From Amoeboaphelidium protococcarum X5 (lineage: Eukaryota > Fungi > Aphelidiomycota), in the NCBI GenBank assembly GCA_023515725.1, contig JALDTO010000208.1:714533-778532 (forward strand): 64,000 nucleotides of DNA, read 5' to 3'. Both the position numbers and the translations under genes were made by a program. A model generated the notes under the pieces. It worked only from the letters and a program-made list of their open reading frames with translations, searched no databases and was not told the origin of the DNA. Shown here in pieces: positions 26,566 through 56,829 of the stretch (the stretch's first letter is position 1; each line of letters opens with the position of its first letter).

Positions 26566-27159
26566 TCAAGTTTAAGGCTAGCCATTATTGATTAAATTAT
26601 CAACGTGGACATCGAGTGATCCCTTTCTATCATAGACAAAGCCGTTTGGATAAGGAATGTTCAAGTTACTCTCAGACGTAGGAAGAAGCGGCTATTGGCC
26701 TTGAGATTCAATCTCCCTGACAATATCGCGAAGTGTAGAAGGATCGACAACCTGATACATTTCCTAAACTTACGCTGGAATTTAGAATCCAGTCTGTTAA
26801 CCCAAGAGCTGAACCTTGGCAATTCTGCGCGGACTTGTTAGAGTGCCCGTTGCAGCTTACACCGCGATCATGTTGAACGCGTCTACATCAATACTCTCTG
26901 GATACATGTTACCCTTCATCAAACGATAATCCAATGCACGCATAGGATTACTCGTTTCTACAGTCTGAATTTAGTAGTCAAACCAGTCAGGCATATCTTT
27001 GAAGGTGCGCTATATTGAACGGGCCATTTAATCAGTATAGCCATCTTTGGAGGGAACATTAGGTATGGGCACCAGAGCTGTGAAAGATTGACAGCACACG
27101 GAGACAAGCAGCAGGGCCTAAACAAGAAATGCAAATTTAAAATAATTCCTCCGATACAT
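26566..27159 (-). CDS. Orphan secreted protein (197 aa)
   Basis: Signal-peptide-like start MYRRNYFKFAFLVQALLLVSVCCQSFTALVP; frame open to TGA at 26566-26568. Confidence 0.65.
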
Positions 27160-49022: not shown

Positions 49023-49980
49023 TATTGATCATGTTGAGTTAAGATCACGACAACTTCTCGCCTTTTTTGATCGATCTTGTTTTATTTTTGTTTTCTAATC
49101 AGAAATTTAGATTACCATCAAATCTTTTTATTAGACTCAATATTAATGCTTTTGCGGTAGAGTAGATTATTTTAGTCGCAATATAGCGGTACTATTACCA
49201 GGCGGTATAATTTAAACGGAAACCCAATTAGAGTTGTGCATTGCCGTTTTGCCTCTAATGGCACTTAATCACAATAACTCGATAAATCTCTAGGTGATGA
49301 TGAATCAAATAATGATTTAAAAATAATCAAAAGTCTTGGAGTTTATATCTGGCCAAAAGATGATAGATCAACCAAGGTGAGAGTTGTTGGTTCTCTGTCG
49401 CTGCTAATCGCTGGTAAATTACTCAATGTGCAGGTGCCTATGCTATTTAAAGACATTATAGATCAACTCAACGTTCCCCTTATAGAGGCTTCCGGTTCAT
49501 CTGTTATGAATGCTGCGGGTGCTCTGCTTATTGGATATGGTGCTGCTAGATTAGGTGCCAGTCTGTTTTCAGAATTTCGTAATGTCGTATTTGCCAATGT
49601 GGCTCAGTCTGCGATTAGAAAAGTATCACGTCAGGTATTTTATCATCTCTTGAATTTGGATCTCAGTTGGCACTTGTCCCGTTAGACTGGTGGTCTCAGT
49701 AGGGCTATCGATAGAGGAACCAAAGGAATCAGCTTCTTGCTGAGTAGTATTGTCTTCCATATCGCTCCCACTGCGTTAGAGATTACCATGGTGTCTAGTA
49801 TACTCGCCTATCAGTATGGACCTTCTTTTGCTGCTCTGACAGTCGCCACTATGGCAGCATACACTGGATTCACGTTTGGTATCACTTCATGGCGTACAAA
49901 ATTCAGACGTGATATGAACAAGGCCGACAATGCTGCAGCGAGTAAAGCCGTAGATACTCTGGTAAATTTCGAAGCTGTAA

Positions 49981-50100
49981 TGTTAAAAACGTAATAAGTA
50001 GAAAATAAATAATAACCAATTATTGTTATTTCTACTTCACTTGAAGAAGTAGTTTGATCATTTTTCACTGACGTTGTACGTGTTTCGTCACAACCTAACA
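49981..50100 (-). repeat. 3' LTR (120 bp)
   Basis: Identical to 55206-55325; preceded on the element strand by the purine-rich tract AGGCGAAAG (putative PPT, 50101-50109). Confidence 0.96.
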
Positions 50101-50126
50101 CTTTCGCCTGAGGATATACGTGCAAC

Positions 50127-53100
50127 TCAACAGCGACTTTAATCTAGACCCAATCTGGCAACATGTCTTCGGAATAGCGTAGGAGTCAGCGGCTTGGTTA
50201 GAACATCAGCAGTCTGCTCCTACGTATTCACATATTCAAACATAACGCGGCCGCTTTCAGTTAACTCCCTGACAAAATGATACTTAACTTCGATATGCTT
50301 AGTTCTGCTAAACTTCTCCGGATTCTTTGTAATGGCAATACAACTCTGGTTGTCTTCCATAACTTTAAGTGGATGAACCTTCACTCTATCAACAGTTTCT
50401 TCATCAGCTAACAACCTTAGCCCATCAACCACAATATCGAGCCCTACTTCATTCAGAATCTCCCTAAACCAGCACAGCTCTTAACACACAGCAGCAGCGG
50501 CATAGTACTCTGCTTCAGTGCTACTTAACGCAACTGCACTTTACAACTTGGACTTCCAAGAGATACTAGCGCCACACATTTGAATTACATAGCCGGTGGT
50601 AGACCGCCTTCCCTCTTAATCGTTAGCAAAGTCTGCATCGGCATAAGCAATGGGAAGCAGATCTTTCTTCCCATCGAAAATCAAAACAAGATCTTTACTA
50701 CCAGCCAAGTATCGCAGGACCCTTCTGACCATACTGTAGTGTTCCATCTTAGGATTCGACAGATATTTACTTAAGTAACCAACAACGAATGCAATGTCGG
50801 GACGCGTACCCACCATAAGATACATCAATGAACCAATCAACGCTCTATAAGAAACATCCAAGAAACCATCATCAACATCAACGTTAATCGCCTAAAGACT
50901 CATGGGTGTTGAGACTCCAACACAGTTGTCCGCTTCAAAGCGAGTAAGAACACGTTCCAGGTAAGTGCGTTGATCTAATTAGATAATCTTCTAAGGCATT
51001 GACCTCTTGATCCGAATCCCAACAATATGCTCAGCAGGACCTAAATCTTTCATGTCAAAACGCTGAGCCAGCTGTGCTATGACGGCATCAATATCTGATT
51101 AGCGCTAAGTAATTAAAAGAATATCATCGACATAGAGCACTATCATAAATAATCTACCGTGCTTGCGCCTGATGTAAAGACAATTGTCGGCATGGCTTCT
51201 CTTGAAACCAATCTCGACAAGAAACTAATGAATTGTATTGTTCCAGCATTTCGGTGCTTATTTGAGCCCATAAAGACTTCTCAGTAGACGCAGTATCTGA
51301 CCTTCAAATTCGGTACCCACAGGCCCTTTCATGTAAATCTCCTCATTCAGTATTCCGTTTAAAAACGCAGTATTTACATCCATTTAATGGATTATCATAT
51401 CATACTTTGCAGCTATAGCAATTACCATCCTAATCGTGTTAAACTTAGCCACCGGAGCAAATGTCTCGGTGTAATCAACATCCTTCACTTGACGGAATCC
51501 TTAAATAACTAATCGAGCCTTGAATCTCTCCACCTACCCACTGGAATCAAGCTTGATCTTAAAAACCCATTTGCAAGGGAGCGCTTTAAAGCCTTATGGC
51601 AGAATGGACCTTTTCCAAGTCCCATGTTTAAGAAGACTCCTCAACTCATCCTCCATCGCAGCCTTCCACTGCGGCCATTCTTTAAGTAACATAGCCTCTG
51701 CAACGGTCTTAGGAGTCACAGGTATGTCTGAGCCACAATAGATTTCATTGAATAGACAAGTCACATCATACGGCATCTCTTCAACCTCAAGCTTAGAGAG
51801 ATAGCATTGAACAAAGTCATCAATTAGTTCGTTTATCTTCACCTGAGACGAGAGTGCCTTGATATCAGCCCGTGTGTTCATGTCGATTTTGAGTTCTTCA
51901 ACCAGGCGTTTGAGTCTCTTATTCACCAGAGCGTCTTCCTCATCCTCTTGCTCTTCACTTTGCTCTAAAGGATTAGACTCTGCACTGATATTACGCAGGC
52001 GACGACTGATTCGCTTACCACCAACTTTAAGACACGCAGATCTCTGTTATATAGCTTACACATTCGTCGCGTCTGCATCATCCCTCACATTCACATTAGG
52101 CTCTTAATCATTCACATTCACATTAGGCTCTTAATCATTCGCATTCACATTAAGATCTTGAACATTCACATTCACATTCTCTTACGGCACATTCGAGCCC
52201 GATACTTACACATTCACTTAAGACACATCACTTTAAGTGTTCACATAAACATCATCTACCAAACCGGTAGGCATAACATCAACATCATCACTTCCGCCCA
52301 CCTCCATCTGAGGATTTGGCGTATGTTAATCATTGTCATGCACATTGGTCTAATCTACATGTCTTTCGCCCAAAGTGGAGCGCATATTATCAGAGCTTTC
52401 GCCGAATGAAGAACGGGATTAATCTGGATTCTATGTCAAGTCACAAGAGGTGCTGCTTTCGCCCAACATCAAACCAGATTCCGACTATGTGTCTGAGAGA
52501 TCTGGAGGATAGAACGATTCATACATCAAGTCAAACTCCTAGGCACCATAAGTCTAACGTGCAACCTCGTGAAAGACGACTTCATCAAAAGGAACATCGA
52601 GTAATGAATTTTAAGCAGTGAGAATCTGATAACCGCTTGGTCTATACCCAATGAAATGACCTTTAGCAGTACGACTAGAGAATTTGAATTTATCAGCTCT
52701 TGCTTCTTTAGGTACGAAGTACGTAACGGGACAGCCCCAAATTCTCAAATGATTGTAGCGCGGTTAGCTCCCATGGTATACTTCGTACGGTGTTATTTAC
52801 AGTTATCCGGCGGCATTACGAGCACTTGTTAAAACTCTATTCGCCACATATACATAAGCCTGCACTGCAAGGCCCCAATATCTTCTGGGCAACCCACTGG
52901 ATAGTAACATACTGCATACACCTTCTACAATCCGACGATTATATCTTTCAGCTACTCCGTTCAACTAAGGTGTATATCTAGGCACCATATCTAAAAGGAT
53001 TCCATAATCACGACAGAATCCTTTAAGATCTTAGTTCACAAACTCAGTACCTTAGTCGCATTTTAGAGTGTTGATCTTCTCACCAGTTTCCACGTTCATT

Positions 53101-55157
53101 CTAGCGTTAAGCACTTAAATGGCCGAGGATGCTTAATCTTTGCTGTACAACAATTCCGCCCATGCATAGCCTGAGTAGTCATCTACTATAGTCAAGATGT
53201 AGGATTACTTCTGAGGTGTTTGAATGCCAATGGGACCGATGAGATCCGCATGAAGCATATAAAGAACACGAGGTGTCCGTAGAGGCATCTCTTTCTTGTC
53301 CCACCGAGAATCTTTCCGTTTAGAAAAATGAGCGCGAGTAGCTTTCGCTTGCAGACAGGGATCACAGTGATCTATTTAATCAAAGTCGATGTCATGGCTA
53401 ACTTATCCTAACATATCTAGTCACACCATTTTCTTCACGATTCCCTTGCTAGGATGTCCGAGACGTTCGTGGATGGTCTTAGCATTGATACTTGCTGACA
53501 GACTGACTACATCTGCCTCGCTCTTACTTTGATCATCAGACTTGTGACGCTTCGGATCACTGCCTTCGGATTGATGAGACTTGGGCCAGATCACCTTGAT
53601 GTCCATAACATACAATCCATCAAAACGTCCAGAACTCATTTTCTAACCAGTTGCAATACATTCTCCATTTTGGTAGATTTTCTTCATGCCTTCCCCAAAT
53701 ACCACATACATTTTCTTGTCATCAACCGGCCCAACAGGGAATAAATTAAAGGAGAAGCTAGGAGAGTACAAGACGTCCTCAACAGTGGCAATGGTTAGTT
53801 TACCTTGGTCATTACGCATTTCAAACTATATGCTGCCTCTACCTACCACGGTAACCAAAGTGCTATTATCAATAGTGGTGCAAACAGCAGAACAATCTTG
53901 GTAATTGTACAACCAGTCTTTTCTACACGTAACAAATTTGTTGCAACCTCCATCACTTAACCAGACATTCTGGTTGTCTAGAGCAGTAGAGTCAATAGCC
54001 GCATTGAGGGTCATGACGTGAGTCACTAGAGACACAAAGTTAGCGTCTTCAGCACTTTGAGCAACATTAGCACTGAACTTGACTTTCTTTATGCCATGAC
54101 TTTAATCTTTGTCTCTAGGTATTAAGTGAGCAGGACGTTTGTGCTCAGCACCTCCACCAGGCCAGTAGCATTCTTCAGCAGTATGGTTCGCTTTCTTGCA
54201 GTTAGTGCAGTACTTGCTACTACTCCCGCCTGTAGAGAATTACTGCTTGCGATTACCTTTAAACGAAGCTCCTTACTTAACCATTGCATTAGCTTACACA
54301 GATTCAGTAGACTCACCACCAGATTAACGTAAGGCTTGTATCTGGCGCTATAGCTCAATACTAGTCAGAGTGTCCATCAGATCCGCGGTAGTCAGAGGCT
54401 TCTTTAAGTAAGTGGAAACGTTGTCCAACGCGCGGATATCGCCATACGTTGGGCCCTACGGTAGCTTATCTAAGAACTTCTAGGCTAGTTTTTACTCCGA
54501 AATAGAAGTATCTCCACACTTCTACATCTCCTCAACAATCGTTCTCATCGCAAATAGAAGTTTCACTGAATGATTGAACTGTTGGAAGGTGAGACTTTCC
54601 AATTGTTCAGCAAGCAGGCCAGAGTGCTTAGGAGACTTAGCGTTCCAATATGCCTCCACTGCTTATACTGCTTCATACGCGTACTTGCACTTGATGATGA
54701 TATATCTCAGCTGAGGTTCGATGGAATTCTCGATAATTGCCAGAGCTTTGCTGTTCATTCCCAAAACTTCCGAAATCACCTTATGCTTATCCAGACTTGA
54801 AGATCCACCTGAAGATACGGACTGTACAGAGGACGGGACTACATCCTTTCTAGCTCCACCTTACTTTCCAACGTCACCTCTCTATGCACTACTATCGGGA
54901 GCTGCCTGATTAACGGCTGACGCGTCCGTTCCGACGGAGACGACGCGAGTTTGGCTGGCGCTATCCAGATTAGACAAGAGATTTGCATAATAGTCTTCAA
55001 CAGAGCCAAGCTTCTTGATCTCTTTGTACACCTTCTTACCCAGCACCGCGTCCACCTTCTTCTCTCTGGCTTAAGTGAGTAACGACTTGTGCCAGGCAGT
55101 GAAATTAGGGCCGCAAAATATCGTTCCATGATACGCATCGTCCTTGCTGCTGTCCAT
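50127..55157 (-). CDS. Copia gag-pol polyprotein (about 1676 aa, single frame with TAR=Gln)
   Basis: Gag with zinc knuckle CTNCKKANHTAEEC; PR WLSDGG; IN HERLGH..CDPC, ADLIGP, CDQGTEF, TPQLNGVAER; RT HQMDV, LYGLKQAP, YVDD; RH YADADFA, STEAEY, RTKHIEVKYHFVRE. All pol-type track fragments share the frame. Confidence 0.92.
52085..52180. repeat. 27-bp tandem repeat in the IN-RT linker of the retrotransposon (encodes NVNVNDQEP-like units)
   Basis: tcacattcacattaggctcttaatcat twice (52085-52138), followed by degenerate copies. Confidence 0.8.
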
Positions 55158-55205
55158 ATTAGCTTTTGATAGAACCTGATATGATATGATAAATTGAAGT
55201 AGAAA

Positions 55206-55325
55206 TGTTAAAAACGTAATAAGTAGAAAATAAATAATAACCAATTATTGTTATTTCTACTTCACTTGAAGAAGTAGTTTGATCATTTTTCACTGACGTT
55301 GTACGTGTTTCGTCACAACCTAACA
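55206..55325 (-). repeat. 5' LTR (120 bp)
   Basis: Identical to 49981-50100; TG...CA ends. Confidence 0.96.
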
Positions 55326-56829
55326 TGTAAAGTATTTCAACAATGAACAGTATGAAGTGGATCGATATGACCGGTAGTTGTAAAAATACGAGCAAGCCTC
55401 ACTGAAGACTGCCACTTCTCTTGCTCTACTTAACGTTGGTCAGAATGCGATATTTAGTGTCACGTTAACTGCCATGATGTGGATGGCCAGTCAGTAGTTG
55501 ATTGAAGGCTCTCTGACTGTGGGAGATTTAGTAATGATAAACGGCTTGGTGTTCCAATTGAGTATGCCCTTGAACTTTTTGGGAACTGTATATAGGGAGT
55601 TAAAGTAGAGCTTGATTGATATGAACTCACTCTTCTCACTGTAGAAGCAGGTTCCATAAATACACGACAAATAGGATGCTATTGCTATATCAGCTCAATA
55701 GTTATTGCTGTAAGGCGCTAAATCAGATACCGCTCTGATTGAATTTGACAATGTTCACTTTAGTTATTCAAGTGATCGGCCCATGGTACGAGGATTATCG
55801 TTCCAGTTACATCAAGGCTAGAGCCTGGGAGTAGTTGGGCGAAGTGGATGTGGTAAAAGTACACTGTTGCGATTGCTTTTCCGCTTTTATGATCCATCCT
55901 AGGGATAGATTAGATTGAGTGGACGGCCTTTACCTGATTATTAACTACAATCGCTAAGGAATCTAATGACCGTAGTGCCTCAAGATACTGTTCTATTCAA
56001 TGATACCATCTACCACAACATATCGTACGGCAAGTTGAACGCGACCAAAGACGAGGTGATAGAAGCTGCGCGTCAAGTGTAATTGGATGAAATTGTGGCC
56101 AAATTCCCTCAGTAGTATCAGACGCAGGTAGGCGAGCGGGGACTTAAACTGAGTGGTGGTGAGAAGTAGCGCGTCGCTCTAGCCAGATTTGTCCTCAAAG
56201 ACGCTCCCATTTGCCTGTTAGATGAACCAACTTCTTCTTTGGATGTCAGGACAGAGTAGTTGATCATGGAGAAGTTGACGGGTAATCTTCGCCGCTCTCA
56301 AGGCAAGTGTTCGATTCTGATTGCTCACCGTCTCAGCACAATCATGAACTGCGATAAGATTATAGTGATGGGCACAGATGATCGACAAGGATAAATTATT
56401 GAGCAGGGAAGTCATCAACAGTTACTGTCCCAAAATGGTACATATGCTGACATGTGGCGGATGCAACAGCACGAATTCAGTGAAGTTCTCCCCAAAGCCA
56501 TCAATAAATGATTCATTTCACTTCAAGTTGGTAGCTCTTATGTTTAAGATTTTTCAATTTTAAGATTTATACCTGGATTTTATACTCAAATATTTCTGAT
56601 TTAGTCAAGAGGAGCGCGCTGTGTTCTTGACACGAACTCTGTAGAAGTGAGCCTCTCTCTCTCTCTCTCTCTTCATCATTCGCCTTAGAGGAAGGAAGCG
56701 TCGCGCTCTTTCTTTTTCCCTCTACTGTCCTTGCCTTAAACCACGGTCTTTGCTATCACTTTAATTCAATTATATCCTATCTATAACATATTGCTGAATA
56801 TTACTGTGTATCTAAGTAGCATTTGAAGA

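Follow-up and report, generated by a model that had tools for sequence, protein, structure and literature searches.

Self-priming has been shown experimentally for the retrotransposon Tf1 and has been inferred for gypsy relatives, including Tj1 (PMC4600332, PMC10085805). In Tf1 the process requires an RNA structure of three duplexes, the 'pretzel' (PMC10085805). Among the Ty1/copia elements, self-priming has been predicted for 89% of 203 plant TAR elements (Neumann et al. 2019, PMC6317226), the criterion being that 10 bp or more of the 5′ LTR are complementary to a region that starts 0-5 bp after the LTR (PMC6317226). The same paper credits to Capy 2005 an earlier proposal of self-priming for the copia families Houba and Osr-1 (PMC6317226). 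A further arrangement is found in the fungal GalEa copia elements, which have a Conserved Hairpin Site instead of a primer-binding site, or PBS (Donnart et al. 2017, PMC5445492).

The locus studied here is a copia element of Amoeboaphelidium protococcarum X5 whose candidate PBS is complementary to its own LTR. The original prediction for this locus was that it is a candidate for self-priming outside the gypsy lineage, its author being aware of no described copia case. The claim of novelty is refuted by the TAR predictions and by the proposals for Houba and Osr-1. Self-priming is therefore not new for copia elements; the present element is perhaps the first case outside plants. Our literature search found no paper naming both Amoeboaphelidium and retrotransposons.

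Structure of the element

The window, by which we mean the whole 64,000-nucleotide stretch of DNA that was analysed, was searched for direct repeats, and a single repeat pair was found, with its members about 5.2 kb apart. Contigs of X1 and X2, two public runs from one study, were compared with the window. The element has the following features:

49981-55325, minus strand: Ty1/copia element, 5.35 kb
55325 to 55206, minus strand: 5′ LTR of 120 nt, TGTTAGG...TTAACA (TG...CA), matching at 120/120 positions the reference used for the 3′ LTR
50100 to 49981, minus strand: 3′ LTR of 120 nt, matching the same 120-nt reference at 120/120 positions
55330-55326, minus strand: target-site duplication TTACA (5 bp), upstream copy, from alignment of the element ends
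49980-49976, minus strand: target-site duplication TTACA, downstream copy, from the alignment and from the empty-site joint 49975 to 55326 in runs X1 and X2
50101-50109, minus strand: short polypurine tract AGGCGAAAG, adjoining the 3′ LTR
50127-55157, minus strand: single gag-PR-INT-RT-RH frame of 1676 codons, with its ATG at 55157 and a TGA stop at 50129-50127
53421-53423, minus strand: the only TGA inside the 1676-codon frame, falling in the integrase zinc finger after its HH half and before its CC half

The polyprotein frame includes 41 TAA and 19 TAG codons, from which it follows that the host decodes TAA and TAG as sense codons; TGA is the only ordinary stop of this host. Motifs appear in the translation in the order CCHC knuckle, D-G-G protease motif, HH..CC integrase finger, YVDD and RNase H. 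Searches with stop-free translated pieces placed gag_pre-integrs at 53424-53642, upstream of an RVT_2 (PF07727) match of 233 bits that lies inside the element on the minus strand (C207:765433-766152 in contig coordinates); Pol_BBD was also matched. The RVT_2 match, the gag_pre-integrs match upstream of it and the motif order, in which integrase precedes reverse transcriptase as is the rule for copia, identify the element as Ty1/copia. We note that the protease active site reads D-G-G rather than D-S/T-G (LSDGGCNKF in the translation; window 53946-53954, minus strand).

The in-frame TGA at 53421-53423 is the same in contigs of runs X1 and X2, although those contigs differ from the window elsewhere. 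With this one codon in the frame, the copies described here may depend either on readthrough or on help in trans for their mobilisation.

Complementarity between the PBS and the LTR

Four segments at the 5′ end of the element bear on how it is primed:

55205-55195, minus strand: candidate primer-binding site TTTCTACTTCA, abutting the 5′ LTR with zero spacer
55253-55264, minus strand: candidate self-primer, LTR nt 62-73 (TGAAGTAGAAA + T), complementary to the last LTR base and the PBS
55229-55221, minus strand: internal U5 copy TTTCTACTT, LTR nt 97-105, a weaker alternative partner for the primer
55271-55277, minus strand: third copy, the U3 CTACTTC at LTR nt 49-55, forming a 7-bp inverted repeat with GAAGTAG at nt 63-69

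The sequence TTTCTACTTCA is the exact reverse complement of TGAAGTAGAAA, which occupies 55264-55254 (LTR nt 62-72), and A120 stands opposite T73 to give a 12th base pair beyond the 11-nt complement. The original prediction had placed here a PBS without a spacer, complementary to LTR nt 62-72 and reaching 12 bp with the last LTR base, and had noted an internal competing copy at about LTR nt 97-105. The coordinates of the PBS and of its complement were confirmed, and the competing copy was located, as TTTCTACTT, at nt 97-105. It was likewise correct that the PBS is not of the TGG type, and the 48-nt leader holds no TGG apart from one at the start codon. That sole TGG was considered as a downstream tRNA-type PBS and was rejected, because it sits at the start codon and the letters that follow it are unlike a tRNA 3′ end.

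How does this arrangement compare with what chance would supply? Where Neumann et al. (2019) looked for at least 10 bp of 5′ LTR complement starting 0-5 bp after the LTR, the present element has 11 bp at offset 0. When perfect complements starting 0-5 nt after a 120-nt block were counted, complements of at least 11 nt were found at 34 of 64,318 background positions (5.3e-4), and in 188 of 200,000 composition-matched shuffles (9.4e-4). The PBS 11-mer as such is not rare genome-wide, with 76 matches against 72 for the reversed control.

The PBS TTTCTACTTCA is identical in the four full copies of the element (L001-L004). One contig of run X1 has an A to G change at the 11th PBS base, after which the last pair would be G-U or the primer would be 10 nt long. 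As to the third copy, the U3 CTACTTC is available for pairing only at the 3′ end of the RNA, where U3 is transcribed; its hairpin has a predicted energy of -8.2 kcal/mol.

Further upstream in U3, nt 10-31 (55295-55316) carry inverted TGACG / CGTCA half-sites around a central CACGTA, an arrangement that is plausible as a candidate bZIP-type binding site. Downstream of the half-sites, at about LTR nt 35-41, there is an A-rich, TATA-like stretch, some 25 nt before LTR nt 62.

Search for a tRNA primer

ARAGORN, run on 74 loci, found 26 distinct tRNAs in 18 anticodon classes. This set is incomplete, covering 30 of the 63 Rfam tRNA loci, and the tRNAs for initiator Met, Leu, Ile, Val, Pro, Glu and Asp, together with the TAA/TAG decoders, fall outside it. 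When the 26 tRNAs were compared with the 41 nt around the LTR end, the best perfect complement was 7 nt long, and none lay at the PBS. None of the 76 genome-wide sites of the exact PBS 11-mer is inside any of the 63 Rfam tRNA matches; with one mismatch allowed, the pattern has 1434 genome matches. A search for the T-loop consensus preceded by an 8-nt core of the complement gave 4 and 1 matches, against 4 and 5 in the controls, and none was at tRNA coordinates. No host tRNA that fits the PBS was thus found among the 26 tRNAs or at the 63 Rfam coordinates, which excludes a tRNA match well but not completely.

Two observations on the tRNA genes themselves may be recorded. ARAGORN reports a tRNA-Ser(CGA) at L031:261-343 (C150, ~26840-26922) that is absent from the 63 Rfam matches, so that the Rfam list is incomplete for long-arm tRNAs. 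A tight, AT-rich cluster of tRNA genes (Trp, Gln, Asn, Tyr) lies on a short contig (L052 / L061; C346:4445-7646) that looks like the mitochondrial genome.

Might the primer be a host tRNA, a tRNA half or some other small RNA after all, the match to the LTR being a secondary structure of the leader or a coincidence? Half-tRNA priming is the usual non-canonical mode of copia elements, as in the Osser, Bryco and Bianca lineages (PMC6317226), and the tRNA search extended to only 26 distinct tRNAs of 18 anticodon classes. Yet the best complement that those tRNAs offer is 7 nt long and lies off the PBS, the Rfam tRNA matches contain no exact 11-mer, the core with T-loop pattern stays at control level, and a host-RNA primer would leave a coincidence of 5e-4 with the LTR unexplained. 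We know of no stretch similar to the PBS complement in the highly conserved eukaryotic initiator tRNA-Met, and this too counts against a tRNA. Priming by a host RNA is, in our view, unlikely.

Predicted folding of the leader RNA

An RNA starting at LTR nt 62 is predicted to pair its first 12 nt with A120 and the PBS, in a fold with an MFE of -13.9 kcal/mol (z -4.4) that was not equalled in any of 200 shuffles. The predicted pair probabilities between primer and PBS range from 0.81 to 0.996, and the primer-PBS duplex is put at -13.3 kcal/mol, against -9.0 kcal/mol for pairing with the U5 copy TTTCTACTT. The predicted energy of the leader is only -4.9 kcal/mol if the primer is blocked, versus -17.7 kcal/mol if it is not. 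The pairing of primer and PBS still wins in an RNA that carries 21 more upstream nt.

The predicted fold is a single extended hairpin, made of the 12 bp and AU-rich extensions. The three-duplex pretzel of Tf1 was sought in this fold and was not seen, the pairing of the post-PBS segment with R-U5 amounting to only -5.2 kcal/mol. On this modelling, the absence of a pretzel lowers the case for an element that is Tf1-like in detail, not the case for one that is self-primed.

It is conceivable that the duplex of LTR and PBS is real and serves packaging, dimerisation, translation control or shielding of the PBS, with the primer being some other molecule or being recruited in a different way. Retroviral and Ty1 leaders do contain functional long-range pairings around the PBS, a precedent for pairing with another purpose, and the three copies of CTACTT(C) suggest a structure that can switch. 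Against this, the pairing covers exactly the position of a PBS, leaves zero spacer and ends at the LTR border, which is the geometry of a primer 3′ end, and a separate primer without a detectable PBS would still be needed. We judge a purpose other than priming to be less likely again than a host-RNA primer.

Copies of the element and conservation of the LTR

The genome contains four full copies of the element (on C207, C164, C314 and C253), identical over every part compared, and also solo LTRs of the family that have target duplications of their own. In runs X1 and X2 a contig at a depth of ~35 joins position 49975 directly to 55326. The part that this contig skips ends in TG..CA, and five letters (TTACA) are shared, so the joint represents the empty site; these ends and the shared 5-nt target duplication rule out the joint as a splice. 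The insertion is therefore either polymorphic or heterozygous. The same runs cover the interior of the element only as fragments, at a depth of ~3-9 and with a few differences, a pattern more readily explained by RNA or by a mixed sample than by clonal DNA. Taken together, the identical LTRs, the identical copies, the solo LTRs and the empty site indicate that the insertion is young and polymorphic, and that the PBS of this family must work.

The four public runs consist of assembled contigs of unrecorded kind that end at branch points of the graph, and they cannot show RNA 5′ ends. Run contigs end at 55235, which is 30 nt into the LTR, and at 50039, which is nt 62 of the 3′ LTR, at a depth of 2.3. 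Both ends were considered as RNA ends and set aside, as graph branching or low depth explains them better; the 30 nt of the former is taken to be k-1 for k=31.

Six distinct variants of the LTR were found, down to 78% identity and with 25 variable positions. There is no substitution at nt 62-73 or at nt 97-105, while nt 61 and nt 74 vary. The statistical weight of this conservation is small (P ~0.05), and since the two oldest variants share flanks, they are not independent. Covariation between LTR and PBS is absent within the family because all full copies are identical.

The two oldest variants are old solo LTRs of the family, at L011:1501-1621 and L014:1505-1636, with 89% and 78% identity and common flanking sequence. 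The shared flanks point to one ancient insertion that was later duplicated with its surroundings, whether segmentally or as homeologous sequence. In the L014 LTR the CTTCTTCCAA stretch has undergone an internal duplication of 12 nt. L011 also holds, ~650 nt from its old solo LTR, a fragment of a different copia-type RNase H region (L011:537-845, minus strand), which is 37% identical to residues 1388-1492 of the element.

Relatives of the element were sought within and beyond this genome. A profile search with RVT_2 places about ten other copia families in the genome, with matches for example at C233:292636, C162:378947, C192:903365, C264:1489903, C146:738184, C264:99926, C155:579524, C264:2176906, C32:5425 and C235:120882; tblastn over the extracted genome loci found no second copia family with a 5′ end. 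Scans of metagenomes with the protease piece and with the LTR-PBS junction gave no match, and a homologous-protein search with the gag piece gave no candidate. The RNase H piece had as its best matches among protein representatives unnamed sequences of no more than 61% identity; of two that were looked up, one could be placed, on a contig that is 1.5 kb long and has no LTRs.

That the complementarity arose by chance in an AT-rich, internally repetitive LTR is very improbable: the LTR is indeed of low complexity, with CTACTT present three times, and some 1-in-1000 events are expected where many elements are screened, but P is ~5e-4 to 9e-4 per element with the match at offset 0, diverged LTRs keep the motif unchanged, and the element still needs a primer, of which no other is visible.

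Discussion

What primes reverse transcription in this element? The best reading, and one that we think is probably right, is that the element primes its own minus-strand synthesis rather than using a tRNA. The position of the complement at the PBS, its exactness, the predicted fold, the recent activity of the element, the lack of a tRNA match and the precedent in other elements all favour self-priming. All of these but the last also support the original prediction, short of proving it. The suggestion of a first copia case fell, and the transcription start near 55264 stays a prediction.

We propose the following path for a self-primed element. Transcription would start at or very near LTR nt 62 (position 55264), downstream of the TATA-like stretch and of the TGACG/CGTCA half-sites in U3. 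The 5′ end of the RNA would fold back over ~47 nt of R-U5 onto the PBS, and the RNase H of the element would nick the RNA after nt 72 or 73. The 3′-OH set free in this way could then be extended through U5 and R, and the resulting strong-stop DNA would be transferred to the 3′ R. Plus-strand synthesis would recopy the primer into the PBS, so that primer and PBS would stay complementary. It may be, and here we speculate, that the U5 copy (nt 97-105) and the U3 copy (nt 49-55) compete with this pairing and thereby tune or restrict priming.

A more far-reaching proposal is that self-priming arose independently in a non-plant copia lineage, in a host that reads TAA/TAG as sense, with a single hairpin simpler than the pretzel and with the U5 and U3 copies as decoys controlling the place and time of primer annealing, which would make this a third, convergent origin of tRNA-independent priming in LTR elements. 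We offer this combination tentatively, and regard it as possible but rather doubtful.

Experimental proof of self-primed reverse transcription is confined to the Tf1 group of gypsy elements; in copia elements it is a prediction made from sequence, so far for one plant lineage only. A compact, recently active copia element with a self-primer of 11-12 bp, in a non-plant genome of 23.6 Mb, would widen the range of the mechanism. It would also offer a simple system for two questions. Did self-priming evolve repeatedly? Is the complex RNA fold of Tf1 needed? There is a practical warning here for annotation as well, in that a tRNA-based PBS finder would record this intact element as one without a PBS.

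Which of the known systems does the element most nearly resemble? The plant TAR elements belong to the same superfamily and share with it the gag-PR-INT-RT-RH order in one frame and the 5-bp target duplication. In both, 10 bp or more, beginning 0-5 bp after the 5′ LTR, are complementary to that LTR, and in both the mechanism is predicted from sequence only. TAR elements are without a tRNA PBS, and here none was found among an incomplete set of tRNAs. The hosts of TAR elements are plants, whereas the present host is not a plant and reads TAA/TAG as sense. The LTR of the present element is also much shorter, at 120 nt, and the element as a whole is 5.35 kb long, compared with 6265 bp for TAR (PMC6317226 supplement).

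The Tf1/sushi chromoviruses, the clade of Tf1, Tf2, Tj1 and Tcn1, are alike in that ~11 nt of the 5′ LTR are complementary to the adjacent PBS, in the predicted folding back of the RNA, and in the need for an RNase H nick to free the primer. They are Ty3/gypsy elements, however, and the present element has integrase before reverse transcriptase, an RVT_2 domain and no chromodomain. Where Tf1 has its pretzel, a single extended hairpin is predicted here.

The fungal GalEa elements are copia elements without a tRNA PBS, as the present one would be on the tRNAs compared, and both have a conserved structure at the PBS position. In GalEa that structure is a local palindrome, the last LTR base being part of it, and no partner for it was found in the LTR (PMC5445492). 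In contrast, the PBS of the present element is non-palindromic and pairs with a segment of the LTR that lies 48 nt upstream.
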